A DNA stretch of 32,000 nucleotides from assembly GCF_000400465.1 (NCBI RefSeq), contig NW_008806283.1, positions 180,001 through 212,000 of the forward strand, given 5' to 3'. The number at the start of each line of letters is the position of its first letter. Positions within the stretch are counted from its first letter, which is position 1. Below the pieces are notes generated by a model, which was not told where the DNA came from, made no database searches, and saw only the letters and a list, made by a program, of their open reading frames with translations. Of this stretch, positions 5,401 through 28,186 are shown piece after piece. Source of the stretch: Wallemia ichthyophaga EXF-994. Lineage: Eukaryota; Fungi; Basidiomycota. The position numbers and the translations under genes were made by a program.

Positions 5401-5510
5401 GGGGACAGTGCCTCATTCATAGCCAATAATTCATTCTCGCCTTGCTGCCTAGTCCCTGGATGTGTAAATTGCTGACACGCTTGCTCAATTCTTCCAATCG
5501 CAGCATCCAT
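2452..5510 (-). CDS. Importin-beta-family karyopherin, exportin-4-like HEAT-repeat protein (~972 aa)
   Basis: Exons 5510-5366, 5319-5006, 4959-2823, 2774-2452; GT-AG introns of 46, 46 and 48 nt give one frame. The spliced N-terminus (RIEQACQQF...RQQGENELL...VLENSQEYYAHFHLL...CLLSYIL) resembles the importin-beta N-terminal domain pattern of exportin-4. Subfamily call is from memory of the family. Confidence 0.6.
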
Positions 5511-8310: not shown

Positions 8311-9632
8311 ATGTTAGTAAAGCTTCTGTGTTTAGCGCTTCTGTCGATCGCAGCAGCCGGACCGTTGCAGCGTCGTCACGGAGAGCAAATTAGAGGCGTG
8401 AGCGATGCTGGTAGCATTGAGAATGTTAGCTAACGCAAAAAAAGGTAAACATCGGTGGTTTTCTTGTCCTCGAAGCTTGGATCACTCCTTCTATCTTTGA
8501 CAACACGGGCAATCCAGACATCGTCGACGAGTGGACATTCGGCGAGTACCAGGATAGCGATCAGGCAGAGGCTGTTATTAACAGTCATCTCGACACATTC
8601 TATACCTATAGCGATTTCCAAGATATCAAAAACGCTGGTTTGACTCACGTCAGAATCCCAATTGGCTTCTGGGCATTCGAAACTCTGGACACACCATACA
8701 TCAAGGGCAACAGATATGCAAAATTACAGGAAGTCGTCGGATGGTGCCGCGATATTGGTCTCAAAGTGTGGATTGACTTACACGGTGAGTGTCTTATCTT
8801 GTCTTACTCACATGACTAAAATATAAAAGGTGCACCTGGATCCCAGAATGGTCAAGACAACTCAGGACATCTTATGGACTACTTCTTATGGCCTACGGAT
8901 CAAAGCAATATCGAAAAATCCTATTACTATATCCAGATTCTCACTGATGAATTCACCAAGCCTGAATATGGTGGCATCGTGGATGCAATAGAGCTTATGA
9001 ACGAGCCACAAGTAGCAGCACGTCCATCAATGTACGATACTGTCAAAACATACTTTCAGAACGGATATAACATAGTGTCACCTAAAACAGCTACAGCAAT
9101 TGCCGGTGGCTTTATTGAACTTGATTCTTGGAATGATTTCTTAACATATCCTGGCGCAGAAAATGTCTACATGGACACTCACAAATACCAAATTTTCTCA
9201 AACCAGCAGATCCATCAGACTGATCAACAGCGTTTAGATTCAATATGCGCGTTCAAGCAAACGTTTGCAGAGCACACGGCTAATCAACATTGGGTGATTT
9301 GCGGAGAATGGACTTTGGCTTTCACAGACTGCGCAAAATATATCAACGGTAGAGGCAACGGATCTCGATACGACGGCAGCCAACCTGGATCAACTGCCGT
9401 CGGCAGCTGTGAAGGAAAGTCAGGCAATGGAGACAACTGGAGTGAGGATTATAAAAATAGATTGCGCTACATGTGGTACACACAGATCGACACATTCGAA
9501 AATGGTGGTCGTGGCTACTTCTTCTGGACATGGAAGAACGAAGACGCTGCAGATTGGTCTTACAAGCGTCTCCTCGAACTTGGCGTCATCTCCTATGATC
9601 CAAACGATTACCAACACGGTATCTGCGGATGA
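8311..9632 (+). CDS. EXG1: Secreted GH5 exo-beta-1,3-glucanase (~409 aa)
   Basis: Exons 8311-8397, 8445-8784, 8830-9632. Signal peptide plus RR site; RGVNIGGFLVLEAWITPSIF; IDLHGAPGSQNGQDNSG; catalytic IELMNEP and GEWTLAFTDC; FFWTWK. Confidence 0.93.
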
Positions 9633-9742
9633 ACAATAGATATATTTACACAGTCTCGCTGGGATAGTGTTGACTGATAAAAATATTTGTATCTCGGATC
9701 TTATATATTCTTAATAAAAAAATGTGTATCTAATATTACAAT

Positions 9743-10827
9743 CTAGGTAGCAAGGTTGACGTCGTTGAGTGCGATGGCTATTGCTGCCTTATGATGGCCG
9801 TTGTACTGCCTCACAGTGTCACCGCTAGCGAGTTCCCATAACCTCGCGGAGTGGTCTGAGGATGCAGAGACGAGATAGGCTGAGTCAGCGGAGAAAGCAG
9901 CATCCCATACCCATCTCTGATGGCCGGTGAGCACCTTTTCCAACCTGAAGTCGTAATTATGGGTCGACCAAATCTTAATCGTTGTATCGGCAGAACAAGT
10001 AGCAAGATGCCTAATGGCAATTGTCAGATTATGAGCAATTGAAAGGTATCAGCTCACTTGGTATCGGGGGAGAGTATACATTTTGTGATATACCTACTGT
10101 GAGCAGGCAGCTTCGTTATTGGAGTGAATTCTGAGGCTTCGTATTCCTGATCGGCGCGTATCTTCCAGACAAAGCAATTACCTTTGTTGTTTCCAGCGAC
10201 GAGCGAGCTGCCGTCAGAAGCAATAGTGACTGAGCGAATGGGCACGTCTTCTTCGGGTACAAGTTCATGGCTGCAGGTGTTCTCACCCAAATCCCAGACT
10301 TTAACGCTTCCAGCTTGGTCGCAGGAGATGATCTCTCCTTGGTTTGGGTGTATGACAACGTCGTTGACTGGCGATGGATGATCGAAAGCCCGCTGTACAT
10401 GAGATGTTCTGTGGATTGAGCAATGAGAAACTAAAGCTACTATTATGACTGATAAGCTCACCTCGTGTCCCAAATCTTGACTGTACCATCCTCACTACCA
10501 GTCGCAATCCACTTCCCCTCAGCCTGGAAAACGACTGCAGTAACGTTTGCAGTGTGTCCGTTAAATGATTGTATCTAAGCCAAGTAAGAAAAGCGCCGTA
10601 ATCAGATTAGAGCAGAGCCATACCGGGTTTGGGTCGCTGCTATTGATATCGTAAAGTTTTACAGAGGTATAGCCTGCGGAGGCTAGAAATTTTTTGTCTG
10701 GGCTGATAGCGAGCCTATTGACGGAATCTGAGTGGTGAATTGTCCGTGAGCATCCACCGCTCCAGGCCTCCCAGAAGCGTATCGTGCGATCGTAGCCCGC
10801 GGAGGTGAGAATAACGTCGGCGCTCAT
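9743..10827 (-). CDS. LST8: TOR complex subunit Lst8, WD40 (~311 aa)
   Basis: Exons 10827-10624, 10574-10462, 10408-10058, 10010-9743. VILTSAGYDRTIRFWEAWSG, GSEDGTVKIWD, GHQRWVWDAAFSADSAYLVSASSDHSARLW, GHHKAAIAIALND are diagnostic. Confidence 0.97.
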
Positions 10828-11280
10828 TTCTAGTTAAATGCTAGTAAATCTGAAATGCACTGTACGTGCGAGTGATGTCAGCGGTGGAAGCGGTGAAAGT
10901 GGAGAATTGAGTGAGGGATACAAATTAATTCCTGTCAGGCTTAAGGAGGGAATTAAATAACTCAATTATCCTGTGAAATGCTTTCTCTCCACGCTGTTCG
11001 CCACCAGCCAGATACAGACTCGCAACCACACTCATGCAAGAACTTTGAGGTGGTAGTAATATGTGAAATATGCATAATGTATCGGAGAATATCCCAGAAA
11101 CTTCTCGCGCCACCTACTCACGCGTTATTACTTCTCACGCAAGTAATGATTTGGGCCTGATGCAATCGTCAGCGGATTGATAGCGGAAACCGTGCAACTC
11201 AATGGGAGACATAGAGCAAGCGTTCCCAATCGTCTGCATTACCCACATCCACCTTTAAAATTTACCCGTGGAACTACATC

Positions 11281-11302
11281 GGATGAACTAATTGCATGTT
11301 TT
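11281..11302 (+). promoter_or_regulatory. Conserved upstream element of ferritin-like copy A (GGATGAACTAATTGCATGTTTT)
   Basis: 20/22 identical to the reverse complement of 22769-22790 upstream of copy B, within otherwise diverged promoters. Confidence 0.5.
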
Positions 11303-11352
11303 AGCGGATTCCAGGTATAAATGACGCAAATCAATTGCCGCTTTTGCTTCTC

Positions 11353-12569
11353 TTACTATTACCACAATGATCTCCAAACTTCTCAGTTCAGCAATCATAG
11401 CCTCTTCTGCACTTGCATACCCAGCGCCCCCAGACGGTGGCGTGGGCGTTTCAGGTGACGAACTCCCTGAGTACACCCCAATGTCCGACTTTGACACCGC
11501 CAGCTTTGTCGTTGGTGTTAACCAGGAGTTCCTGGAGTTAGACCTCTTTCACAACATCCTCGCATCATTTCCAGACGAGGATTTCGAAGCTGTTGGCATT
11601 GACGCATCACAGAGATATTACATCCAAGAAATGGCTGAGCAAGAGGTTGGTCATGCAGAGATGATCAACAACATTCTCGCGTCGGTTGGACAGACCTCCC
11701 AACAGTGCTCATACAAGTACCCTTACACTACTGTGAGAGAGGCACTTGCGTTCGCAGAATACATCACTAGATTCGGTGAAGCAGGTGTCTATGGTTTCCT
11801 TCCTCATTTGGACTCTCGCCCAATCGCTCAACTTGTGAGTAGACATTGTCTTGCTAATGATTTTTCTGATGAAACATAGCTTCTCCAAAGTATCACCACT
11901 GAGGCCAAGCAAGAAGTCTCTATGGCAATGATGGCGGGTGAATTCCCACAACCATACTGGTTTAACATGGGTAGGAAAATTCTCATCCAAGGATTTTTAA
12001 GCTGATTAATTCAATACAGGTCTCACTCAAGCTATGGCTTGGAGCTTGTTGGTTCCTTACCTCGACAGCTGCCCAGAAAGCAACCCAAGAGTCGAGTTCC
12101 CAGTCTTCCCAGCTTTGAATGTCACCAACGCCAACGCGACGCTCGACACATCTATCGAATCCGCTGTCAGTAATAACTACACACACGTAGCTCAACCTGG
12201 CAGACAGCTCGAGCTGCAATGGGAGGCACCAGGTATGGCTGTTGGACCATCAGAGCAAAACTACACCACCGATAAGAACCCAGATCTTGGTGACCCATCG
12301 CACGTCGCCTTCATTCACCAACTTAATGTCACATATGCTCCACTCGAAAACATCGACACTGAGGCCATGACAGCTACCACTATCCACCCAGACTTTATGA
12401 TGTACGGCAAGGGTATGGGCGTTAATGGAACTGTCTTCATCGCAATCACCGACGAAGAAGTTCCAGTCACACCATACAACTTTAGCTTACTCAACGATCA
12501 CGTCCATGCATTTGGACCATACTTTGCAGGTATCTGAGCGATTTAAGCAATTGCTGCTAGAAATCTTGA
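11353..12569 (+). repeat. Left arm of 1217-bp inverted repeat (partner 21517-22733)
   Basis: Base-by-base comparison with the reverse complement (position p pairs with 34086-p): no indels; mismatches only at 11359, 11387, 11612, 11678, 11885, 12432, 12564. Confidence 0.98.
11367..12537 (+). CDS. rds1: Secreted Rds1-type ferritin-like (Ferritin_2) protein, copy A (358 aa)
   Basis: Exons 11367-11834, 11880-11970, 12020-12537. Signal peptide; YPAPPDGGVG, SDFD, NQEFLELDLFH, MAEQEVGHAEM (ExxH), TRFGEAGVYGFLPHLDSR, QSITTEAKQ match the fungal Rds1/ferritin-like family. Confidence 0.88.
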
Positions 12570-12795
12570 TTTTATAAATCTTAAAGACACAAACTATGCT
12601 TGTATGAATTGATGAATTATTGATGGTCTCTGCGTATCTTTTTATTGGAATTAGTGAAACTTTTCTCATCTTTAACACTCATCGGGAACACCAGAGAGAG
12701 CTATTTCAGCAACTGAATAAACAACAAAGAAAGGTAATTTATAATAAAAGGTTTACAACGGCAGAATGCACGTAACTTTTTATCTAATTTGTACA

Positions 12796-14294
12796 TTATT
12801 GCTTTGGTAAATCGTTCAAGGATGTCAAAGGAGAAGGAGGATCGTGGATGTTGATCATTGGAGGCATTTGTTGAGGGAAATGAGCTTGGGCTTGGGCTTG
12901 AGCTTGAGCCTGCAATGATTGAACTAATTGAACAGAAGCAGTGGCTGAGATATTCGACATCCAAATTCGAGTTTTAAAACCTCTAAAAAGTTCTCTAACT
13001 AATTCTCTAAAGTCTATCCTTTGTTCGGAAATGAAATAAAAGGTTAATTTGCGTCTATCCCATTGGTATTCAGCGTCAATAACTTCCATTGGCAAGTTCC
13101 TTTGTTTAACTTTTGAGATACAGATTTGCAGGGCCTTTGATTCATCTTGGCGCTTAGTAATCAACAACTGAGTATCAGAAGTGGAAGCCTTGGCAAATAT
13201 TTTCTTTGGTTGGAGGTCTTTAGAGACGGTCTTGAGAGCTTCAAAAGCAGGGTTGTGATTGTTGTGGGTAGCAGAAGCAGCGGGTAATTGATGAACGGAG
13301 GATGTTGGTGAGGGAGCATCATCCAAAGGAGAAACAGATATAGAAGGTCTTGAAGTGGGCATAGAAAAGTCTGAGTGGATGGGATGAACAGACTGCCCAG
13401 ATTGAGAAAATTGGAATTGGTTCAAGTCTTCGATAGTGAGGGAGTCATTTGTAACTTTACCAAGATCCTTGCCCCTGTCAGCTTCAACAATGACGAGGTC
13501 ACCAAAGTGTATATTCGAAGAGAGGGAAGTGTCTAGAGAGTAAAATAAGTCGGACCTTTAAAGTGGGGTTAGTGACGACATAGAAAAAAGGAAAGAACGA
13601 ACCTCGCAGCCTTGAATTCAACGATGAAGAGGGTAGTAAGGGGAGGAATGCTAGACGTGGGAGTGCCTTTGCCGAGATCATTGAGACTTGACTGCGGTTG
13701 CTGGGTCTGAGACTGAGACTGGGATTGAACGTCAAAAGGGAAAAATCTTGGCTGTGTGGGAGAAGAGAGAGGAAGAGGAGGCAAGTTGAAAAAGTGCGCA
13801 GGAGGATGGTTTTGAATTGGGGAGAGTTTGGGGAGGATTTGGTTGAAAGGATTTCTTTGGTTGAGCTCGAGACCAAGCGCGCTGTTGTCTAAAGGTTGTA
13901 GACTTGGGGGGAATTGAGAAGAGAGGGGGGAAGACTGAGAAGCAAAGTCAAATCTGGAGCCCCGCCTTTCGTTGTTCAAGTTGAAGTTGTCGGAGGATGA
14001 TTTGTGGGTGATCGTTGGGGATGACGAGTGGGGGTCTGGAGCTGCAACTTGACCTGGACCTGGACCTGGACCTGGAGCCACGTAAGAAGATCTATGCTTG
14101 TTTATTGGCTCGTCATTCAAATTCAAATTAAAAAAGTCGAGCTCAGTCGTGTTGGCCAGCGTGGGTCTTCTGTACGAATCTTGAGAAGGCTGCGTCGGGC
14201 TATCGATCATAGAATGCCTCCTCAAAGAAATATCATCGATTAATAAATTTTTATTATTAAATGGAGATTTGTTTGAAATATCATTCTCAGCCAT
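12796..14294 (-). CDS. PSP1: PSP1 C-terminal-domain protein (~483 aa)
   Basis: Exons 14294-13603 and 13555-12796. FIVEFKAARSDLFY, GDLVIVEADRGKDLG, MEVIDAEYQWDRRKLTFYF...RIDFRELVRELF...TRIWM; low-complexity N-terminus. Confidence 0.9.
12884..12907. repeat. (GCTTGR)4 coding hexamer repeat, Gln-Ala tract of PSP1
   Basis: Seen directly; translates to QAQAQAQA on the minus strand. Confidence 0.85.
14051..14074. repeat. (GACCTG)4 coding hexamer repeat, Pro-Gly tract of PSP1
   Basis: Seen directly; PGPGPGPG on the minus strand. Confidence 0.9.
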
Positions 14295-14325
14295 ACTCGT
14301 TTGTTACCAACGATAGCTGCTGTCA

Positions 14326-17264
14326 ATGTCAGCGTAAGTATATTAATAAATAAAATTTAATTTTTATAATTAATTATTACAGCTACTCGAGACACGCCCC
14401 TACAAAGGCTTTTGGTTTAATATTTAATTCCCCTTCCAACGTACACTATCAAACATCTACAAAGCTAGCATATCTCCCTGCACTTGAAGATGTACTCGTT
14501 TGGGATATTAAATCTGCTACTCTTCAATCTGAGTGGCATGAGACTGGCTGTACAGCTCAAGTTACCCAATTATCCCCAAATCCTGCCAATAACTCCTTCG
14601 CTGTCGGTTATAGTGATGGCTCTATTAGAATTTGGCAGAATAACGCTGCAAACATCACTTTCAACGGCCACAAATCTCCTATCACCTCTCTTGAATGGGA
14701 CTTTGAGGGTATACGCCTTATTTCTGGCTCAAAAGACACAAATATCATCGTTTGGGATACTTTGGCTGAACAAGGTCTTACTCGTTTAAAAGGTCACAAA
14801 GATGCTATAAACACACTCCATTTCATCTCTCAAAATCATTTAATCTCCACTTCAAACGATACTTTCATCAAGCTATGGGATCTTAACACTCAACATTGCT
14901 TACAAACTCTAATTGGTCACAGATCCCCTGTCACCACCTCTACCTTAACAAGTGACCTCTCTTTACTCGCTTCTGGCTCTTCCGATGGTGAAATTAGACT
15001 TTGGTCTATTAACCACGAAAATCTTCATGAGGGCTTGTCTCAAGATGATAATGGCGATTTCATCAAATTCATCAACCATATCTCCACCCTTCCAACTCAC
15101 ACTATTAATAGAAAACGCATCTCTCAACTCGCTTTTCACGATTCCTTACCCTTCTTAGCCATTTTATCTTCTGATAGATCTCTCGAAGTTCTCAGATTGC
15201 GTACTGAAGAAGAAATCAAGTCAAAGATGGCTAGACGTAGACGTCGCAATAAAGATAAAGGAAAAGCTACTCATGATGATTCTTCTGTCATTAACGTCAC
15301 CATGAACGATAGGCTAACTCCATACTTGGTCGTCCATTCTCACTCCAAGATCAAGTCTTTCTCTTTTCCCCCACTTCCTTCTAATTTTGATCCTAAAGCT
15401 CCTGCACAGGTCCTTTTAGCATTAGCCAATAATGCTGTTGAATTGCATGCCATACCAGCACCAACCAAGAAGACCGCTGATGAAAGGGAGCCTGAAGCTT
15501 ACCGCCTTCACTCTTTAGATCTTCCCGGCCATAGAGCTGATATACGCGCACTTGCTCTCTCCTCTGATGATCAGTTGTTAGCCAGTGCATCCAATGGCCA
15601 ACTCAAGGTGTGGAATATGAAAACTCAAGCCTGTCTGAGAACCATAGACTGTGGCTATGCCATCTCTGTTGCTTTCCTCCCAGGCAACAGGTCTATTGTC
15701 ATTGGTACAAAGAGTGGTAACCTTCAACTTTATGATTTAATTTCGTCAACTCAAATTGCAGATGTTGATGCCCACGACAATACTATCTACGCCATTGACA
15801 TCGCACCATCAAAAACTTCACTCGTCACTGCCTCTGGCGATAAAGATGTCAAATTCTGGGATATCACTGAAGTTGAACGTGACTCTGATGTTGTCGAAAA
15901 TCAAAAAGTCAAGTCTGTTGGCATTGTGCACACCCGCACACTCAAAATGACCGATGAAGTGTTGGCTGTTAAGCATTCACCTGATAACCGCTACATAGCA
16001 GTATCACTCTTAGACTCAACTGTCAAGATCTTCTTCAATGATTCACTGAAATTTTATCTATCACTCTACGGACATAAATTGCCCGTATTATCCATGGATA
16101 TCTCACACGACTCGAAACTCATCATCACCTCATCGGCTGACAAGAATATTAAAATTTGGGGTTTGGACTTTGGTGACTGTAGGAAATCTCTTTTTGGTCA
16201 TGATAGCAGTGTGATGCAGGTTCAATTCGAAGCCGATTCTCATAGATTTTGGTCCACATCCAAGGACGCAACCGTTGCTTATTGGGATGGTGACAAATTT
16301 GAACAAATTCAGAAATTGTATGGACATCAAGGTGAAATCTGGGCATTGGTTACATCCAAAGACGGTCAATTCTTGGTAACAGGCTCACACGATAAGAGTT
16401 TGAGAGTCTGGGAAAAGCTCGACGAGCCTTTATTCTTAGAAGAAGAGCGTGAAAAGGCTTTGGAAGAGTTATATGAAGCGGATCTTGCTGATGAGGATGT
16501 TGGCAAGGACCAGAATGATCAGGTTGAAGCTGACAACGTACACAAAGCAACAAGCGAGACGTTGATGGCTGGTGAAAAGATTATTGAAGCCATCGAAATA
16601 TCTGACGAGGATATTAATGCATTGAATGACTACAATAATCTTTCTCAAGTAGATAAGGATAAGGTTGGTGGACCACCCACCCGCCATGCACAGTTTGTCG
16701 CACTGGGTAATCCAACTCCTGACGAATACTTGCTCAAGTTTGTACTTGAGAAGATTTCTCCACCTGATCTTCACGATGCTCTACTCGTTTTGCCTTTTAG
16801 CCATGTCATTTCACTGTTGCGTTATCTCGAAACATGGTCCGAAAAGGTGTGTTATGTTTGAGAAGTATCAAGAGTAAGCTGACAAGAAAACATAGGGATG
16901 GAATATCGGATTAGTCGCGCGTATACTTTTCTTCCTACTCAAGACCCATCACCACCAAATTGTAGCAAACAGAGTGATGAGAAACACAATGATAGGGCTA
17001 AAAAAGTCACTTAGGAAACGCTTGAATGAGCAGAAAGTGAGTTGCTGTCTACGATTAAGGAAATACTTTACTTACACATAACAGTCTGTTGTTGGATTCA
17101 ATCTTGCAGCTCTCAAAGTGATCAGACGTGCACACGACGCTGATCGCATTTCCAAATACTTAGAGGAGGAGGATATGGATGAAGAAAGAGCGAACCAACG
17201 TCTCAAAGCTGAGGAAGAAGCCTTGATGAATGCAGGTAAAAAGAGAAAGAGGATAATATTATAG
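14326..17264 (+). CDS. DIP2: SSU processome WD40 protein Dip2/Utp12 (WDR3) (~930 aa)
   Basis: Exons 14326-14333, 14383-16846, 16896-17036, 17085-17264. Spliced start MSAYSRHAPTKAFGLI; LPGHRADIRALALSSDD; LSLYGHKLPVLSMDIS; DLHDALLVLPFS; C-terminal Utp12 domain GFNLAALK. Confidence 0.95.
14361..14368 (-). promoter_or_regulatory. Candidate TATA box (TATAAAAA) for PSP1, inside DIP2 intron 1
   Basis: Minus-strand TATAAAAA ~67 nt upstream of the PSP1 ATG, within a 49-nt intron containing only 4 G/C. Confidence 0.4.
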
Positions 17265-17326
17265 ACTAATTGTACAAAACGTAGACTTCTAATTTATATT
17301 ATCATTGCAATTTTAGATCTAACGTA

Positions 17327-17757
17327 TCAGACTAGTCGCTGTGGTTGCGATTCCTCAATCTGTGCTGAATCAGATGACGTCTTGCGCTTTGATTTGAGTT
17401 GTTGGAGCTGAGACTTAAGGCTCTCTGGATCCTTTGCAGGTTTCTTAAAATATTTGTGAGTGATTTTGCTTGTAAACAGCAGTCAGCCTACATTTGTATC
17501 TTCTTCCTTAGGCCAGAATGTCGTTTTTGCCTGCATTTAAAGATCAGAGTGAGTAACTAGGTGTGTGTGTGTATAATCAATCTCACAGGCTCAATGTGCT
17601 TGTCATACCACTCAGGATCTCCAAAATGGTACATGAATGCTATTGGGAAGCTGCCAATACCATCAGCTTAAGCTGGGCGTATAGTGTCACGTCGATAAAT
17701 TAACACTCACAAGAGATAAGCAGCGAATTTGAATATTTCCAAGTTGGGTCCACCCAT
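17327..17757 (-). CDS. PET100: Cytochrome c oxidase assembly factor Pet100 (88 aa); missed by the ORF track
   Basis: Exons 17757-17711, 17650-17587, 17530-17492, 17443-17327 give MGGPNLEIFKFAAYLFFPIAFMYHFGDPEWYDKHIEPAKTTFWP...QRLV*. Confidence 0.92.
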
Positions 17758-17806
17758 CCTACAGCGTATTCTTCCTAATCGACGGCCAAGTCCAAGGGGC
17801 TAGATA

Positions 17807-19500
17807 ATGACAGACATTGATACAGACTTTAATAGTATTTCACTGCTATCCAATCATAACAAGGAAAATGCCATGACTTCAATTGCTATACCCAAATCAT
17901 CCACTTCTCTAAAAGATAACGATATCGATGATAGCAACCATAATGAGAGGAATGAGAGTTCGCCAAGAGGCAGGCATACAAAAATGCGTTCCTTGAGCAA
18001 TCCCGCATCTGATTTGGATACGGATACTGGCTTGTTGTTACGCAGAGTTGATGAGACTGCCTCTACATCAAGGAGGCATTCATTACATAAAGGGAAACAT
18101 AATATTATACACGCTATCGAAGAAAACGATAAGGGCTCTTCTGATATCGACTGGCAGTTCTGGGGCGAAGTGATGGCTAGTAAGTCTGAGACATTTCGGT
18201 GAGATATGCCTGACAGGTGTGCGTTATAGACTACGAGGACGTAGCTCATAACCAACCGCATGCGCTCTCCAAGGCTATTCAGAAGGGTATACCCAAGGAA
18301 TTACGCGGAATGTTGTGGCAGCTCATGTGAGTAACGTCATTGATGTGATTATCGTTGTTGACTATTATGCTCTAAAGGAGTAGCTCCAAGAACCCAGATC
18401 TAGAAGCATTATACCAAGAATACCTAAAGTTGTCATCAGTAAATGACAAAGCGATACATAAAGATCTTTCACGCACATTCCCGGCGTTGGAGTACTTCCA
18501 GGACCCAGATTCAGTAAATTGGCTTTTCAACGTGGCCAAAGCTTACTCACTTTATGATGTGGAGTGTGGATATACCCAGGGAATCCTATTCGTTATAGGT
18601 CCTCTTCTGTTAAATGCGCCAGATGAAGAGGCCTTTGGACTGCTAATCAGATTAATGCAATCTTATGATCTGCGTGGTCACTATCTACCTGAAATGCCTG
18701 GTTTACATTTGAGACTTTTCCAGTTTGATAGACTATTGGAAGAGTTTTTACCCATGGTGTACACGCACCTCACTAAACAAGGTGTCAAATCTTCGATGTA
18801 TGCTTCTCAATGGTTTATGACACTTTTTTCGTATCGCTTTCCACTCGACATTGTCTACAGGATATTCGACAACATATTCGCTGAAGGTATAGAGGCTATT
18901 TTTAGGTTTGGCATAGGATTGATGAAAAAGAATGAAGACAAATTACTGTCTCTGCAATTTGAAAATATAGTCGACTTTCTCAAAGAGGGAATGTTGGAAG
19001 CATACAGAATACCACGAGATACCACAACTAGGGCAGGATCAGTGTCACTGCAGGCACCTCTACTCAGAGGGACATCACACAGCTCACCACACTCGAGTAT
19101 AAGCGGAAGCGTCTCCCCCAGACTAGCTACTTCAGCGGATAGCGGTGAATGGGACTGTGATTCATTAGTCTCAGATGCTTATGATGTCAAGATAACACCA
19201 TTCCAACTAGATTCTTATGCTTCTGAATGGGCTGAGACTTGTTACAATGTCAACAAACACGCGCATGAAGTCGATGAATTGAGACTGGCAAATAGAGGTC
19301 TGTCTTCGCAGATAAAAAAACTGGAGGCTAGTCTTACGCAGATCAACGGAGAGCATTGCGAGCTGGTTAAAACTCTCGTCAATATAAGAATCGAGAAAGA
19401 TGAGATGGAGGAATCTCTAATCAACAAGCTAGTCAGGGCACAGATGGAGAAGGCAGCAGCAGAGGAGGAGCTTCAACGCATGAGAGAGCACATCAGGTGA
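17807..19500 (+). CDS. GYP5: TBC-domain Rab GTPase-activating protein, Gyp5-like
   Basis: Exons 17807-18179, 18230-18326, 18378-19500. IDWQFWGEV, GIPKELRGMLWQ, IHKDLSRTFP, GYTQG, YASQWFMTLFSYRFP, then a coiled coil. A further intron 19497-19548 is possible, moving the stop to 19558. Confidence 0.9.
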
Positions 19501-19761
19501 TAAACAAGAAAATCAAAATAGCAGTTTCTAATTTGTTTCAATTTCAAGGTCTCACTGATATGGTAAGTGGTAAAATGAAAATTTAAAAAATTGTATGAAA
19601 GTGGAAATGGAGAGAACGATTGTAATAACGCAGTTTAAATTAAAAGCCTTACGATTTTTGCTTAAATTAAAAATATAAAATCTCACGGCGTTCACTCGCT
19701 AAGACGAATCCATCGATCTTTCCTAAACTTAATTTATCGTTCAAAAAATAAGATTGTTTAG

Positions 19762-21203
19762 ATGACGGCAGCTGGCACATCTAGCGGCGAGACACCAGCC
19801 GCATTAGCTGAATTAGTAACTCAAGTGTCTCCAAATTCCCAACCGCAGAGGAATACGCGTCAACCTGTTCGCAAGACTAAGAAAAAGAAACAGCCTGCTC
19901 CCAGTGAAACTGAGAAGAACATCGGCAGTCACGAGAATACCAATAAACAGCCCCAACAATCGTTATCGACTTCAGAAAATGACGCTCAATCACCCCATAC
20001 TGAACAGCCTCCACAAAGACCCGAGCAGATTCCTACAACAGCGACAAACAATGGTTAGTGTTTATCTTACATAATTATAGACTCAAATTTACCAAATACT
20101 CACTAGTAAAAGAAGAAACTCAGCCAACGAAAGAACCTTCCAAACCAGTACCCAAACAGCGCAAAAAGAAGTCAAAATTATCTTCATTCTTCTCTTCCAT
20201 CGTTCCATGCGTTGGAGAATCATCAAGAAATCCAGCGCACGACATTTCATCGAGTGAGGCACCACACAAAACACAAAATCAACCGTCAGCATCAACATCA
20301 CGGCGGAAGTCTAATAATAACATAAATAACTCAAGTACAGTAGACCTTAGTCAGAATAATGAAGATGATATACCACCTGCTACGCCAGTCATACCTTCTC
20401 AAGGAGTTGATATGCCTCTATCAGATACAGCTGGATTGACCTCAGGAGCTGTTATGCCCCCCGGAAAAGAATTAAATCCACCAACACCATCTCGTCAACC
20501 ATCCACTCACCAACACCACGAAAGCGAATCTTCTGAGGAAGAGGAAGAAGAGGAAGTTGATGAATTTGAGAGTGAGCTGGCAGATGAGGAGCGCATAATC
20601 GCAAAAGGTGGAATGGGTATACCAGTTGGTGAGGATGGTCAACCTAACCCTCTTTTACCTCCTTTAATCACATCAGACAATGGCAAAAAGTGCTTAGTTT
20701 TGGATTTGGATGAGACTTTAGTGCACAGTTCATTTAAATTAATTCAGCATGCTGATTACGTGGTACCTGTTGAAATTGAGTCGCAAACTCACAACGTATA
20801 CGTGATAAAGCGCCCAGGAGTTGATGCTTTCCTTAAGAGAATGGGTGATTTGTTTGAAATTGTCGTATTCACAGCTTCACTATCTAAATACGCCGACCCA
20901 GTATTAGATATGTTGGATATCAACAGAGTAGTCAGGCACCGATTATTCAGAGAAAGTTGTTACAATCATAAAGGAAATTATGTCAAGGATCTCTCACAAT
21001 TAGGTAGACTGATCAACGATAGTATAATCATCGATAATAGCCCTGCATCTTACGTATTTCATCCAAACAATGCAGTACCAGTTTCAAGTTGGTTCAATGA
21101 TCCTCATGATACTGAATTGACCGATTTGTGTCCTTTCTTGACAGATTTGACAGCGGTTGATGATGTTAGAGGCATATTAAATGGTACTTTATTAGCTTCA
21201 TAG
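19762..21203 (+). CDS. PSR1: Psr1-like FCP1/SCP (NIF) HAD phosphatase (~462 aa)
   Basis: Exons 19762-20053 and 20107-21203. [17 protein letters not shown] (DxDxT), [39 protein letters not shown]. Confidence 0.93.
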
Positions 21204-21516
21204 TCTTTCAGTTCCCTACCTTGACACAGTTCATATTCAATATTTTTCAATTTACATTCAATTAGATTTGCATTCATAATACTTGGTCAATCAACACATT
21301 CCACAGCTCTCAAAATGTTATAACTTTAGTTAAACACAATCGAATCATTTGAAACACCGAAACCAGTCATTGCTACTCCTTTCACTTCTACAATTTGTAA
21401 TTCTTTAATTCCAATTACATTAAAACTTCATCCAAATTCTAAAGCGATTTCAAATGCGTAATCATTCATGAAAGTACAAGCATAGTCATTGCTCCCCAAA
21501 GACGTGTCATTTTCAT

Positions 21517-22733
21517 TCAAGTTTTCTAGCAGCAATTGCTTAAATCGCTCAGATACCTGCAAAGTATGGTCCAAATGCATGGACGTGATCGTTGAGTAAG
21601 CTAAAGTTGTATGGTGTGACTGGAACTTCTTCGTCGGTGATTGCGATGAAGACGGTTCCATTAACGCCCATACCCTTGCCGTACATCATAAAGTCTGGGT
21701 GGATAGTGGTAGCTGTCATGGCCTCAGTGTCGATGTTTTCGAGTGGAGCATATGTGACATTAAGTTGGTGAATGAAGGCGACGTGCGATGGGTCACCAAG
21801 ATCTGGGTTCTTATCGGTGGTGTAGTTTTGCTCTGATGGTCCAACAGCCATACCTGGTGCCTCCCATTGCAGCTCGAGCTGTCTGCCAGGTTGAGCTACG
21901 TGTGTGTAGTTATTACTGACAGCGGATTCGATAGATGTGTCGAGCGTCGCGTTGGCGTTGGTGACATTCAAAGCTGGGAAGACTGGGAACTCGACTCTTG
22001 GGTTGCTTTCTGGGCAGCTGTCGAGGTAAGGAACCAACAAGCTCCAAGCCATAGCTTGAGTGAGACCTGTATTGAATTAATCAGCTTAAAAATCCTTGGA
22101 TGAGAATTTTCCTACCCATGTTAAACCAGTATGGTTGTGGGAATTCACCCGCCATCATTGCCATAGAGACTTCTTGCTTGGCCTCAGTGGTGATACTTTG
22201 AAGAAGCTATGTTTCATCAGAAAAATCATTAGCAAGACAATGTCTACTCACAAGTTGAGCGATTGGGCGAGAGTCCAAATGAGGAAGGAAACCATAGACA
22301 CCTGCTTCACCGAATCTAGTGATGTATTCTGCGAACGCAAGTGCCTCTCTCACAGTAGTGTAAGGGTACTTGTATGAGCACTGTTGGGAGGTCTGTCCAA
22401 CCGACGCAAGAATGTTGTTGATCATCTCTGCATGACCAACCTCTTGCTCAGCCATTTCTTGGATGTAATATCTTTGTGATGCGTCAATGCCAACAGCTTC
22501 GAAATCCTCGTCTGGAAATGATGCGAGGATGTTGTGAAAGAGGTCTAACTCCAGGAACTCCTGGTTAACACCAACGACAAAGCTGGCGGTGTCAAAGTCG
22601 GACATTGGGGTGTACTCAGGGAGTTCGTCACCTGAAACGCCCACGCCACCGTCTGGGGGCGCTGGGTATGCAAGTGCAGAAGAGGCTATGATTGCTGAGC
22701 TGAGAAGTTTGGAGATCATTGTGGTAGTAGTAA
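21517..22733 (-). repeat. Right arm of 1217-bp inverted repeat (partner 11353-12569)
   Basis: Reverse complement of 11353-12569 with 7 substitutions and no indels. Confidence 0.98.
21549..22719 (-). CDS. rds1: Secreted Rds1-type ferritin-like protein, copy B (358 aa, identical to copy A)
   Basis: Exons 22719-22252, 22206-22116, 22066-21549. Five synonymous differences from copy A. The ATG at 22719 is preferred over the ORF-track start 22746 because homology begins just upstream of it. Confidence 0.88.
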
Positions 22734-22768
22734 AAGAAAAATGCATTACTTCTTAAAGGGGTCTCGGC

Positions 22769-22790
22769 AAAACATGCAATAAGTTCACCC
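22769..22790 (-). promoter_or_regulatory. Conserved upstream element of ferritin-like copy B (GGGTGAACTTATTGCATGTTTT)
   Basis: Counterpart of 11281-11302. Confidence 0.5.
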
Positions 22791-23325
22791 ACTCAGACAT
22801 CAGTCCGGGTAAAAGTTGGTAAAAGCTTTCCGGATGAAAGGATGTCTGTGATTGCTGTATCGAGTAGCGACGTTATTTAATAATGATCCCCTGATCAGTT
22901 ACGTCACATATATCACGTTTCGAATTCAATTGTTAATGTCACCCTTCGAATTCGATTGTGATAGCCAAGAAATCCTGTTCTATTCCGAGACACATCTCTG
23001 TCACAGTCGGATGTGTATCGTATATTAGCACGAGTAGCAATCGAGTAAAAGTAGCTTTTAGCTCTTCAGAAGGCCGTAGAAGGGCAGTAGCCTAGACTCT
23101 GTTGCCATCCAATCCTTTCCAAGATTATTCATCAGCCACGCTCAATCATTAACGAATAGGAAGACAATTAATTAAAAAAAATCTTACTATTCGTGGATCT
23201 AGTTAGTGTCTAGTTTTATTCTGATTATCTAGATGTAAGCTGTTGTTCTGTTCAACGTAGTAAGCTTGTTTTTGTTATAAATCAAAACATTCCAATGTAA
23301 ATTTCAATCAATTATTAAACCAAGC

Positions 23326-24707
23326 TCATTGTTCACGCGCTAATGGATTTACAAGCATTTCACCGAATTTTATTAAACTGGATGTACCACGTGGTTCGTT
23401 CAGAAGGAGTGGAATCTTTGGAAAGTCAATTAGTGCTGATTGCGTAAAAATACGCTTACTTTAACAATGTGGAAGTCTTCTCCATATCTAATACACTCAT
23501 CAGCATTTGACGTTACACTCATCAAACACTCACAAGTCATCAGCTTCTGCAAGATATTTCTTTTGGGTGCCATCTCTTGCTAGACATCTATCGCAATTTG
23601 ATCGAGAGTTACCTTGATCGTCTTGTGGTAGCAAGAGGAGGTTGTTTATAACTATGTTGCTGGTATCTATGCCACTGATTGAGTGTTAGTAGCTTCAAGC
23701 ATAGTTGAAAGCACTCACTAAGTCGAAAGTTCTTGTATCAGACGCTCAGTTTCGTATATAGACAAGAACTCAGCAATACAGACACAAACAACTGGAGATG
23801 GTGCGATTAGAGTTAGTGAGGCATTAATTACCAATACTACTCACAAGTTGTCAAGTCAGCGTTCTCAGAAATAATCAGCTGTGAACGCGATCATAGCTCA
23901 ACTGACTCACCTTGAATTGGGTGTTGACTTCATCGATGGTAGTGCGCATACTCTCTAATTTAGCAAAAATATCCTCTTGGGCATTAGCTCCCCCTCCCAT
24001 CATACCGGTGAAGTTGTTGATCAGACCACCAAATCGACCAGACAAAGAGCTAATTTTCTCCAAAGCCTTGGACAGAACGGTTGGGAAAGATAAGAAACGT
24101 AAAGTGTGACCAGTAGGAGCAGTATCAAAAACGATACAGCTATATTGTTGAGAATTGACGTATTTCATAATCTCAGCGAATCCCATAGCCTCATCAACAC
24201 CTGGGATAGCGAATGCCAAATCTTGGACAAAGCTGTTCAAGCCATTTGAATCACTGTCTTCATTGCTCTGGACCATTTCAGTTAAGGCTGCAGAAGGATC
24301 GATTTCCATTGCGGATAAGTTGTCGAAACCGTTGACATTAGTTGCCTCTTTTGAGAATTTCTGATTAAAAGCATCTGAAAGGTTGTGTGCGGGGTCTGTT
24401 GACTGTAAATGCGTAAAGGTGCTTAGAAACTTGTTACGTTTGAGTGAAATATATAACTCACTATCAGCAAAACGCTTTCACGGGACTTTGCGAGCTGAAT
24501 AGCTAAAGAGCAAGACGTTGTAGTCTTACCGACACCACCTTTACCACCTAATTCAAAGATATAGACATTCACCGTCCTGATGCAAGTACTAACCACAGAA
24601 GATCCATTTGAGCGTCTAAGCTTGTTTAGTAAAGCGTCTTTAGAAAACTCAAATCTCACTTTGTTATTGACTACATTCTCAAGCGTTGGTGCAAACTCGT
24701 CTGCCAT
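23326..24707 (-). CDS. GET3: Get3/ArsA ATPase for tail-anchored protein targeting (~332 aa, 9 exons)
   Basis: Exons 24707-24660, 24615-24594, 24547-24462, 24402-23911, 23863-23845, 23791-23719, 23674-23534, 23487-23460, 23415-23326. [67 protein letters not shown]. Confidence 0.96.
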
Positions 24708-24737
24708 TTTGATATTGCTGGTCAAGAATCAACTTCC

Positions 24738-26335
24738 ATGTCGCTTGTATTTCAGACTTTGAATTTATTGAGTGTGGAGAGGAACAGTTACGGCGTTAGA
24801 ACGGGCGATTACTTGAGATACAGGTGGGTATGTTTATATGCATGAAATGCCTTGTAACAGCGCATAGGAAACACTGTACTAGAAAGATCAATAAGCTGCG
24901 TAGAAATCTCAAGCTGACGAATGGAAAAGGCAAGAGATTCAATAAATGTACAGCAGAATCCATTCTCAGACAATCTGATATCAGAGTATTGGAATTGCTG
25001 CTCCTCTCTGCCGATAAATATTGGGCTGAGTCTCAAGAGAATAAAGACGCAACGAGCAAATTGAGAAGATCAGATCAATTTGCAAATGTCTTAATTGAGG
25101 CTTCTTCCAAGTTCGGTCTTCACTCCAGTGACACTGTTCAGTTGGAAATATATCACAAATTCATCCAAGGAAGCTACAATTTGAGTAAAAATAAGTTCCA
25201 CGACGCACTCAACTTATTGTCAATCTCTTACGTTTACCTCAAAAACCTTATTAACGCTGCACCTAATGATAAGATTAGGGCTTTGGGTGAAGGGTGGTTA
25301 GATGAGTTATCACCCAAAATTCGTTACTGCTCTTATCAAAGCGGGAACAAATCTACATCACATGAGATTGATAGAATAGCAAACGAGCATTCATCTTCTC
25401 ACTCGTTTGTTCAACTCGAGTACAGCCAAGAAGATAAGCCAACTAAAGTAAAGAACTTGACATGGCGTGGCAAGGAATTACGACTCACATCTGTTGACGT
25501 CGTTGAAGCCATACACAAGTTACAGTCTGTCATTGACAAGAAGTCTGGTAAATCAACCCAATCACTATCAAACTATGACGAAATTCTCAACACTTACACC
25601 AACGCGATAGAGATATCGCCTCAAGGTCTATTGAAGCAGGTCCTCACGTACAAAATGCTCGCTTTGAGATTAGAAAGAGATCTCAAAATCAACAACCAAC
25701 TCGAGTCAAACGAACCTGCAAAAAATAGATCAAAAGTTAAAGTTATCGATGGAATTATCTTCACATTAGAGCAATTACGTAATTTGCACATTGTTGAATC
25801 TGACGACTCGGATTTGAGTGGTTATGTTGAGACTAAAATCAGCTACCATCAAGCACTTAAGAATTACACCCTCGGTTTATCGCACTTGATGGCTCACAGC
25901 TATGGACCTTCTATCAGATTACTGGAGTCTTGCAAGTTCTACAACAGATCAGGATTAGAATTGTTGATGAGCCTTGATGAAAGCACCTTAAACCATTCTG
26001 AAGCATTCGAGCCAGTCGTTGACATCGCTCTAATTGAAGACTTGAATAAGATGGTAGACACAGCTCTGGTTAACTCCAAGAAGGCTTGGTTCGCTCAGCA
26101 GTTCAAGCGTCCACTCTTCTTCGATATTGCCAACACCTACGTTGAACCACCACTTGACTACATACTTGACAAATCTCAATCCAAAGATACAAAACCTTCT
26201 AAAAAGGAAGCTCAGAAACCGCCCACTGGCCACGTCATCTCTAGTGAAGATTCTAAACAAACTCAAGACTCTGCTGAGAAGAATGCCAACAAGACTGCCT
26301 CTTCAGGGTGGTTTGGTAGTTTATGGAAGCGTTGA
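24738..26335 (+). CDS. SRP68: Signal recognition particle subunit SRP68 (~517 aa)
   Basis: Exons 24738-24823 and 24868-26335. ERNSYGVRTGDYLRYRKHCTRKINKLRR, LLSADKYWA, ELSPKIRYCSY, RPLFFDIANTYV, GWFGSLWKR. Confidence 0.92.
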
Positions 26336-28186
26336 TTGTGTTCAAAGTATAAAACATATCTTGAAATTATAGATAGAAATGAATCAAAGGATCTTTGAGT
26401 ACCTGTGTTTTGATTACTGTAGATGCTTTCACCCATGTAGAAGACCTTGTAAGTATCAATAAAGCCAGAAGCCAAAGCACATTTTTGTGTCAGCCGCCCA
26501 AATCGACGTATCTAAGTACGCGATGAACCAAACAACTATATCATTAAGCAACAAGATTTTGTCTCAATGGATCAAGACCAAATGTAGAAATATATGATAA
26601 GTGATGTGCTAACACTTATAATATCTGACAAAATACTTGACAACCTACGAAGCATCCAACTGACAAAATACTAAGACTTGCTTGAGTCATCTCTCACTTA
26701 TTCAATTGAAGTCCAACTAATCATTAATCTGGTTTCCCTCAAGGCGTTTATCAATGATGTCAACAGAGTCGTGTTATCAGAGTGAAAGTGTGATGAATTG
26801 TGTTATACGAGAGTTAAATAATAATAACAATTTAAGTGACAACACCTAAATACATTCAACGTCATCATGTTTCATGACTCCTAATTTTTCTCATTTTACA
26901 GCATTATAGTTGATCCTCGCAGAGCAGCAACAGCTCGAAAACAGTCAAACACTAGCAAACTTCAACAGCCAGTACTATTATAAAGCTAAATAGATCAATG
27001 AAATTACTCTTTTATATCTGATTATACCCTGATTCTTACCACATCACCAAAATAAAGCTCGTCATCTCCAAATCAAGAACGACACGCTCAGTAACGTCTT
27101 CTTCATATTGCTGTAATTACTACAAATATTAATATCATTCTATAGCTGTTGATTTGGCGACTAATTCAAAAGCATCTTTATCGGTATTAGCGCCGTGCAA
27201 TGCTCTGCTCGTCCAGTTATGTGGTATGTCGCAAGGAGAGTTTTGATATTTCGAAATGCAACTTCATACTATCCTGCCTTCTGTGATTTCAACGCAGACT
27301 TGATTGCCTTTTACAAGTCTATTATTCGAAATATCAAAATGCACTTGGTCTATCCAAAACCCCCCGATTCAAAGTTGGATTGAACTCCACTTGTCTTTGC
27401 ATGAATCGATTGTTCAAAGTCGAAGATGATCCAGAATGGTAAAACATTTCCCCTGTAGACACTGTTTGTCGGAAAACGTTAATCGCGTCTAGAAGTGTGA
27501 GCATTTGTAATTTTGGGTTCTTGCGCTCTTCATCAGCAAAAATTGATTGTATCGATCACTTAATCGCGTCAAATCCTCCACTTTTATCCCATAGCGCGCT
27601 AAAGAGTGTTGTCGGATTGTAATTTCCGAGCATCTTATAGGACGCAATTGGAGGCTCAGGGACATAATTGTGGTAAAAAATTTTAGAGCTTATTCAGGGC
27701 TACCTATGAAATTCTTTTATTTGAGATCATTCAAACTCGTAAAATGAGATGGGTGGTGGTAGTCGAGAATCCAACTCAGTGGATATCGAGAGGAGAGTTA
27801 ATCTGGAAACATATTTAGATTGCTGGAGATGCCATGAGATCTATTGTCCTGCTAAACTGTTCAAATTGTTAGTATTATCTCAGCATTCGTCTTCTGACAT
27901 ACTTGGTCAATTGCGGGGTGAACTAAGTTTGTTTCGTTCATTGGAGTGAGGGGCTATTCAATCCTATTAAACATGTTATCATACTCAGTCTAGCCCTTAA
28001 AAACATGCAGACAACAAAGGTAAAATAATTGTGCAAAGTGTTTGAAATGTTAATATAAGATTTTGAATACATTGGAGAAGTTGATACAGAAAGAACATAA
28101 GCGTGAAACGGAAAGCAAGAGTTAAGAATACAAGGGAGCGTATAAACCGAAATGAGATAAGCTCCAAATAAATACCTTTAGTCAGC

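Follow-up and report, generated by a model that had tools for sequence, protein, structure and literature searches.

The 32,000-nt stretch of DNA analysed here (KE007233.1:180001-212000; the window) comes from Wallemia ichthyophaga EXF-994, to our knowledge the most halophilic fungus known. It contains two inverted copies of the ferritin-like gene rds1, designated A and B, that are nearly identical along the gene body and strongly diverged just outside it. Our comparisons make it very probable that an old duplication gave rise to the pair and that gene conversion has since homogenised its core, so that two promoters now serve the same protein, because the duplicated block (approximately 1.85 kb) exceeds the tract of identity (1222 nt) and carries rds1-derived flanks that are only 43-50% identical.

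A repeat search of the window retrieved one long inverted pair (11348-12569 and 21517-22738), of 1222 nt and 99% complementarity, with its arms 8947 nt apart. Arm A (11348-12569, plus strand) runs from 19 nt 5' of the ATG of copy A to 32 nt beyond its stop codon, and arm B (21517-22738, minus strand) was delimited by the repeat search plus a base-by-base comparison; we consider both arms as the putative conversion tract. Copy A (11367-12537, plus strand; probably EOR00712) occupies the ancestral position, with its ATG at 11367, a stop codon ending at 12537, exons at 11367-11834, 11880-11970 and 12020-12537, and introns of 45 nt (11835-11879) and 49 nt (11971-12019). Copy B (21549-22719, minus strand; probably EOR00718) is derived and specific to W. 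ichthyophaga, with exons at 22719-22252, 22206-22116 and 22066-21549. The two introns (94 nt in total) are identical between copies, as are the deduced 358-aa proteins, which match exactly EOR00712.1 and EOR00718.1, each annotated as "Protein rds1" in EXF-994.

Comparison of 11353-12569 with 21517-22733 gave exactly the seven differences in 1217 positions counted by an earlier sequence-only reading of this DNA (11359, 11387, 11612, 11678, 11885, 12432 and 12564), and one further difference at 11352, outside the span considered there. The perfect tracts between arms thus measure 6, 27, 224, 65, 206, 546, 131 and 5 nt, and the longest of them had been reported correctly. With our gene model we also reproduced the claims that the introns are identical and that the five differences within the coding sequence (CDS) are all third-position synonymous transitions (AGT/AGC, CAG/CAA, CTC/CTT, CTC/CTT and ACT/ACC). 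An all-synonymous outcome for five differences has a chance of about 5e-4 (239 synonymous and 835 nonsynonymous sites), and this pattern of zero nonsynonymous versus five synonymous changes indicates that both copies are under purifying selection.

The change in identity is abrupt at both ends of the tract (11347/11348 and 12569/12570), occurring within a few bases, and beyond them about every second base differs. Identity stops 19 nt before the ATG, or 14 nt without the mismatch at 11352, and 32 nt after the stop codon, close to the 14 and 30 bp estimated previously. The 5' end lies around 26 nt downstream of the TATA box of copy A, and the 3' end is probably inside the 3' untranslated region. 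The sequence-only reading had equated the homogenised unit with the transcribed part of the gene, which our data do not establish; the boundaries coincide with insertions or deletions (indels), the 5' one lying next to a 16-nt insertion in A and the 3' one at an indel of 5 nt.

We compared the locus with those of four other Wallemia lineages: the species represented by run SRR25399871 (locus L024), W. hederae (L025 and L014), W. mellicola (L026 and L027) and "KERN" (KERN20-1; L002 and L008), a distant Wallemia-like fungus from ENA metagenomes. Among them, the SRR25399871 species stands nearest to W. ichthyophaga and is referred to here as the closest relative or sister species: SRP68 identity is 82% in it, 75% in W. 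hederae, 58% in W. mellicola and 41% in KERN, and nucleotide identity of flanking genes also ranks it nearest (76% versus 73% and 70.5%). In W. ichthyophaga, copy A follows a GH5 glucan 1,3-beta-glucosidase gene (plus strand) and a highly conserved WD40 gene (minus strand), both within 8323-10827, and the order glucanase-WD40-rds1 is kept in all four lineages. A single 65.7-kb contig of the closest relative contains the glucanase and WD40 genes, one rds1, PSP1, WDR3, TBC, NIF, ArsA and SRP68; no second rds1 copy was found on it. We therefore place copy A at the ancestral site, where rds1 already adjoined PSP1 before the two species separated.

Copy B, conversely, is an insertion found in none of the four other lineages, not even in the closest relative. 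In all four, NIF (plus strand), GET3/ArsA (minus strand) and SRP68 (plus strand) directly adjoin, and the distance between the stop codons of NIF and ArsA is 233, 266, 188 and 530 nt, versus 2122 nt in W. ichthyophaga, where the GET3/ArsA ATPase gene occupies 23326-24790 (minus strand; stop codon at 23326-23328). Positions 21247-21421 align with nearly the whole 233-nt intergenic region of the closest relative, which fixes the insertion point to about 6 nt, and similarity returns near 23270. The inserted block (21422-23267, minus strand, although its right end is approximate, at about 23265-23290) thus spans some 1.85 kb and comprises a 95-nt 3' flank, the 1222-nt arm and around 530 nt of 5' flank. 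We discarded that copy B is a retrocopy: it keeps both introns and carries at least 240 nt of the rds1 promoter. An inversion with staggered breaks was also rejected as the origin of the inverted pair, since the spacer between the arms (12570-21516; 8947 nt), with PSP1 (minus), a WDR3-like gene (plus), Pet100 (minus), a TBC RabGAP gene (plus) and the NIF phosphatase gene (plus), matches all four outgroup lineages in its gene order from PSP1 to NIF and in its orientation with respect to ArsA-SRP68; an even number of flips would escape this detection.

The flanks of both copies retain traces of common ancestry. The proximal promoter of B (22739-22979, minus strand) lies outside the identity tract and shares homology with the promoter of the only rds1 copy of the closest relative (L024 13392-13653), with an alignment score of 73 for the 240-nt upstream flank of B as compared with 32.7 ± 4.3 in the null distribution (z of about 9). 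Likewise, the 3' flank of B within the inserted block (21422-21516, minus strand) is 66% identical to the rds1 3' flank of the sister species and 43% to that of A. Upstream of both copies, and also in the sister species, we found a 22-nt motif, GGATGAACTAATTGCATGTTTT in A (11281-11302, plus strand), about 65-85 nt 5' of the ATG, and GGGTGAACTTATTGCATGTTTT in B (22769-22790, minus strand), with 20 of 22 matches between A and B; none of 300 shuffles reached its score and 0.01 matches are expected by chance. The score of a gapped alignment of approximately 150 nt upstream of A and B was reached by one of 200 shuffles. These blocks, together with the three-way alignment with the sister species, uphold the description of the upstream DNA in the sequence-only reading as homologous but diverged with indels. 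Overall, A-B identity is 49.5% in the 5' flank and 43.2% in the 3' flank, with indels, versus 99.4% in the core (Fisher P ~1e-118).

Divergence was not evenly distributed among the flanks. The three-way alignment assigned about 73 changes to the A branch, 39 to B and 35 to the sister species (site patterns B = sister, 73; A = sister, 39; A = B, 35), so the proximal promoter of A (11098-11347, plus strand) is the long branch of the comparison and appears remodelled. It contains a consensus TATAAAT at 11316-11322 and the A-specific 16-nt insertion (around 11329-11344), 4 nt from the identity boundary. The gap between WD40 and rds1 is 533 nt in W. ichthyophaga as compared with 1665 nt in the closest relative (L024 12004-13600), indicating that a large segment was either lost from the promoter of A or gained in the closest relative. 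Alignments of the upstream regions of A and B with the promoters of the two KERN paralogues, P0132 and P0133, were no better than shuffles, the distance being too great to decide orthology.

Synonymous divergence (dS) between A and B is 0.021, and nonsynonymous divergence (dN) is 0, whereas dS between W. ichthyophaga and the SRR25399871 species is 1.33; nucleotide identity of rds1 is about 70% between these species and 99.4% between the copies. Using B as a clock, the duplication would date roughly to the species split. It is, then, older than the similarity of the core suggests, as implied by its earlier description as "old", but it is not ancient in the genus, the site of B being empty in the four other lineages. 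A single copy in a sister species had been proposed beforehand as a sign of recent duplication; the sister species does have a single copy, but a recent duplication does not follow from it, because the flanks have diverged about as much as between species. Polarising the five synonymous differences by means of the outgroups was uninformative at dS above 1. The wider duplicated block, the contrast between flanks and core and the scale of dS all favour the earlier proposal that the gene body is homogenised by conversion, and strain data fit with it.

The EXF-994 reference was built in 2013 with SOAPdenovo (K=21) from 500-bp and 2-kb libraries. Contigs from at least eight further strains start 131-179 nt inside arm B and run through the flank of B, ArsA and SRP68, indicating that the insertion is no artefact of that assembly. 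In short-read assemblies the gene body appears as lone contigs of 1075-1210 bp, which is what the collapse of a two-copy repeat should produce; the SPOI contig covers exactly 11360-12569, the interval bounded by the outermost sites that distinguish the copies. All B contigs from the further strains contain the B-type alleles at 22727 and 22734, and seven of them also at 22699, where strain SPNZ is A-type. Copy B of SPNZ also has the alleles 11381A and 11397T (the latter causing I11L), a haplotype that it shares with the collapsed SPOI contig. Additionally, Logan contig L021, from another run, joins the 3' flank of B and NIF to an arm that is A-type at 11612, 11678, 11885, 12432 and 12564. We rejected an inversion as the source of L021: a crossover within the arms keeps the alleles 3' of it with their own flank, yet 12564, only 5 nt from the boundary, is A-type. 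Divergence between strains in this region is 0.2-0.57%, and the published density of single-nucleotide polymorphisms in W. ichthyophaga, a recombining population, is 0.13-0.40% (PMC6738226). These patterns are suggestive of conversion tracts with different extent in different strains.

We weighed other explanations for the same data. Were copy B a very recent duplicate of the 1.2-kb gene segment only, with no conversion and with the sharp ends being simply the ends of the segment, its absence from all four other lineages would be expected, as would a core divergence between A and B (0.57%) of the same order as that between strains. However, the inserted block is of about 1.85 kb and not 1.22 kb, and its rds1-homologous flanks, which should then be as similar as the core, are 43-50% identical; moreover, the 5' B-type alleles are common to at least eight strains while internal sites vary among them. 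We consider such an origin very unlikely. Even less credible is that one arm was misplaced or duplicated in the 2013 short-read reference. Near-identical 1.2-kb repeats are indeed error-prone in a SOAPdenovo assembly with K=21, but the junction of the arm with the 5' flank of B is present in independent assemblies of at least eight strains, its junction with the 3' flank of B and NIF is present in a Logan contig from another run, many strains yield the separate gene-body contig of around 1.2 kb expected of a real two-copy repeat, and the position of A is supported by synteny in four other taxa. We thus regard an assembly artefact as extremely improbable.

Alternatively, purifying selection and codon-usage constraint could by themselves keep old copies identical, with no exchange of DNA, in agreement with the lack of nonsynonymous changes among the five coding differences. 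Nevertheless, synonymous sites are near saturation between species (1.33) versus 0.021 between copies, and both introns are identical; because introns and synonymous sites are identical or nearly so, selection at the protein level cannot explain the homogenisation, and we give this possibility practically no credence. We are somewhat less dismissive, while still judging it unlikely, of a foreign origin of copy B, by which B and its flanks came through introgression or horizontal transfer from a lineage nearer to the SRR25399871 species and its body was later overwritten by A via conversion. As this predicts, both flanks of B are closer to the sister species than those of A, and A-B flank identity is about equal to that between A and the sister species. 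A faster evolution or remodelling of the promoter of A would yield the same pattern, though, as seen in its 16-nt insertion, new TATA box and the difference of approximately 1.1 kb in the WD40-rds1 gap; we saw no other sign of foreign DNA, with an unremarkable GC content, and the core would still need conversion, so that this explanation bears on where B came from and leaves the mechanism as it is.

Several observations weigh against an old duplication homogenised by conversion. No conversion event was seen directly, and the evidence from strains comes from collapsed contigs and from different strains, SPOI and SPNZ; that both copies share I11L within one strain is what we infer from these two, unphased. 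In the other strains, only the three 5' B-type alleles were confirmed, and the differences at 11612, 11678, 11885, 12432 and 12564 derive solely from the 2013 SOAPdenovo assembly. The flanks of B are nearer to the sister species than those of A (59% versus 50% in the 5' flank and 66% versus 50% in the 3' flank), and this asymmetry demands either a roughly twofold faster evolution of the A flanks or a different origin of B. Flank alignments are also short and gappy, identities of 45-50% are near the output of MAFFT for unrelated DNA, and the case for homology between the A and B flanks comes mainly from the motif region and the three-way alignment. Finally, the distal 290 nt or so of the inserted block did not match any of the sequences tested.

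With an old, converted duplication as the preferred reading, the following history can be proposed. Once the W. ichthyophaga lineage had separated from that of its nearest sequenced relative, a DNA-level duplication would have copied an rds1 unit made up of the gene, 240 nt or more of its promoter and some 95 nt of its 3' flank. This copy would have been inserted in inverted orientation around 9 kb downstream, in the intergenic region between the convergent genes for the NIF phosphatase and GET3/ArsA. Repeated non-allelic (interlocus) gene conversion would then overwrite one gene body with the other, maintaining the 1.22-kb core at approximately 99.4-100% identity, while the unconverted promoters and 3' flanks would diverge by substitutions and indels down to 43-50% identity. 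Because heteroduplex formation needs continuous homology, indels interrupting it at the ends of the tract could make the boundaries self-reinforcing. The outcome would be two doses of one salt-induced, predicted secreted protein, with an ancestral-like promoter in B and a remodelled, TATA-bearing promoter in A. The anatomy of the pair, the lineage-specific insertion, the homology and divergence of the flanks and the occurrence of the arrangement in other strains are shown directly by the sequences, and conversion as the homogenising agent, the cause of the boundaries and a benefit in dosage or regulation are those parts of this history that we infer.

The deduced product fits with the previous designation of "secreted stress protein" by its Pfam domain, its fold and the literature, secretion being judged by eye from the N-terminus alone. 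Residues 49-171 match PF13668 (Ferritin_2) with 61 bits, as compared with a gathering cut-off of 24.7. An AlphaFold (AF2) model built from 34 homologues, with a predicted local distance difference test score (pLDDT) of 84.3 and a predicted template modelling score (pTM) of 0.83, showed a four-helix ferritin-like bundle followed by a C-terminal beta-sandwich. The best Foldseek matches in the PDB were 8wai, 8w9k and 8kce, all corresponding to the tardigrade protein RvY_06210 (RvFeMP-1) and covering both domains, with E values from 5e-12 to 7e-10 and template modelling (TM) scores of 0.74-0.76 on the target over 319-326 columns; chains of RvFeMP-1 were the only strong PDB matches of the model. 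A phmmer comparison with RvFeMP-1 gave an E value of 1.4e-8, with a sequence identity of only about 18%. Residues E54, E93, H96 and E164 align with the RvFeMP-1 ligands E51, E90, H93 and D162 and are invariant in the 34 fungal homologues, whereas the M2 ligands E132 and D135 fall on T134 and G137 in the phmmer alignment, with an invariant E138 one residue off.

The RvFeMP-1 family includes Rds1 from Schizosaccharomyces pombe, PCC13-62 from a resurrection plant and DRB0118 from Deinococcus, and is linked to desiccation tolerance; RvFeMP-1/2 and DRB0118 are the only members known to have metabolite phosphatase activity (PMC11616004). In W. ichthyophaga, expression of Rds1 (EOR00712, GME2762_g) rises 10.8-fold with salt, from 29 reads per kilobase per million mapped reads (RPKM) at 10% NaCl to 317 at 30% (PMC3849046). 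The published RNA-seq table shows only one rds1 copy (PMC3849046), and the read mapping tolerated up to five mismatches, making the assignment of this signal to one copy unreliable. Among strains, we found all four combinations of V94A (11647, codon 94) and I11L (11397, codon 11) in proteins P0001, P0122, P0125 and P0127; V94 is inside the metal-binding motif E93-x-x-H96. These combinations could reflect recombination, conversion or chimeric collapsed assemblies.

The surroundings and structure of rds1 vary considerably across the genus. Its 3' neighbour differs across three lineages, being a gene for a 905-aa product, PAP2 or PSP1, and the gene following rds1 in KERN (L002 11262-14223, plus strand) corresponds to 2461-5498 (minus strand) of the window, inverted and on the other side of rds1 in both W. 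ichthyophaga and the SRR25399871 species. To judge from these differences, rearrangement breakpoints have repeatedly fallen at the 3' end of rds1. The gene contains two introns in W. ichthyophaga, two in the SRR25399871 species (L024 14094-14144 and 14203-14257), with one shared position, and three at other positions in W. mellicola (L026 13484-13533, 13723-13771 and 13816-13861), and is intronless in KERN (L002 10001-11098); to judge from these gene structures, intron positions turn over quickly among Wallemia. The annotation of W. mellicola merges rds1 with the downstream PAP2 into one 731-aa product (L026/L027 13169-16180), and this fusion may explain that its rds1 does not appear among the homologues listed.

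Elsewhere in the window, the intergenic region between SRP68 and a bZIP gene (26400-28150) measures around 1.77 kb; its counterpart is shorter in W. mellicola and the SRR25399871 species (about 0.2-0.3 kb) and longer in W. hederae (around 3.4 kb). In W. ichthyophaga it contains no open reading frame of at least 70 aa, no tRNA and no Rfam match. These lengths identify it as a second lineage-variable insertion. A 30-nt inverted pair of 80% complementarity (651-680 and 10957-10986), 10 kb apart, was treated as a probable product of chance. Scans of the window for bacterial promoters and terminators, tRNAs and Rfam families returned nothing relevant.

A duplication of rds1 was also found in a distant relative. 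KERN contains two intronless paralogues, P0132 and P0133, separated by 24 kb and in direct orientation, which share 910 bp at 100% identity, preceded by 126 nt at 87%, and are unalignable before CDS nucleotide 64. P0132 is at the ancestral glucanase-WD40 locus, whereas the genes on either side of P0133, DUF3140 and ATG4, adjoin each other in W. mellicola; we found no homology between the flanks of these paralogues beyond L002 10064-11105 and L008 10064-11106. The N-terminus of P0133, MISHYLTLGLNFLTRL..., is unlike the signal peptide-like start of P0132. This pair resembles that of W. ichthyophaga in having the same parental locus, a nearby second copy and a long perfect tract with an abrupt end, but differs in its direct orientation, its 24-kb spacing, its lack of introns and a homology that begins 63 nt inside the CDS, giving different N-termini. 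Copy B was rejected as an orthologue of the second KERN copy: its flanks show no synteny with L008 and the site of P0133 is empty in W. mellicola, which points to independent duplications, the one in KERN having a conversion-like tract of its own.

In W. hederae, contig SPNW01000087.1 ends 135 nt into the rds1 CDS (L025 13222-13356), the neighbouring contig SPNW01000006.1 (L014) starts approximately 618 nt from the end of PSP1, and no rds1 protein from this species is present among the homologues listed. This break in the assembly may mark another collapsed rds1 repeat. It is conceivable, if rather doubtful, that rds1 is a hotspot of recurrent, independent duplication and conversion in xerophilic and halophilic Wallemia, with W. 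hederae as a possible third case, that an extra dose and a second, differently regulated promoter are adaptive at very low water activity, and that the inverted arms could let populations carry the 8.9-kb PSP1-NIF segment in either orientation.

Converted duplicates of this type are well known, including the inverted stress-gene pair Hsp70Aa/Hsp70Ab at 87A in Drosophila melanogaster, which is under concerted evolution, and the arms of the human Y-chromosome palindromes, which are converted inverted duplicates. The rds1 pair is therefore a clear though unexceptional example of concerted evolution, although in a literature search we found no paper describing it as a converted repeat. As in the Hsp70 pair, a stress-inducible gene is present in inverted copies a few kb apart, with nearly identical coding regions and diverged outer flanks, and paralogues within a species are more alike than orthologues between species. 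Unlike in Hsp70 and the Y palindromes, the W. ichthyophaga tract includes two introns and stops some 20-30 nt from the CDS, comparison with four related lineages allows the duplication to be dated, an ancestral-like promoter is paired with a remodelled one, and the host is a basidiomycete with a compact genome in which conversion is deduced from the DNA alone.

Having a sister species with one rds1 copy, and three more outgroups besides, makes the history of this pair legible, such that the parent, the daughter, the insertion point, the extent of the original block and the limits of the tract can all be read from the sequence. In practical terms, the rds1 repeat collapses in short-read assemblies of Wallemia and may break that of W. 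hederae. Like RvFeMP-1 (PDB 8KCE), S. pombe Rds1, PCC13-62 of Craterostigma and DRB0118, Rds1 of W. ichthyophaga is tied to low-water stress. Given its strong induction by salt and the ties of its family, in tardigrades, resurrection plants and Deinococcus, to the tolerance of desiccation, the increased dosage of Rds1 and the diversification of its promoters are a candidate haloadaptation of W. ichthyophaga.

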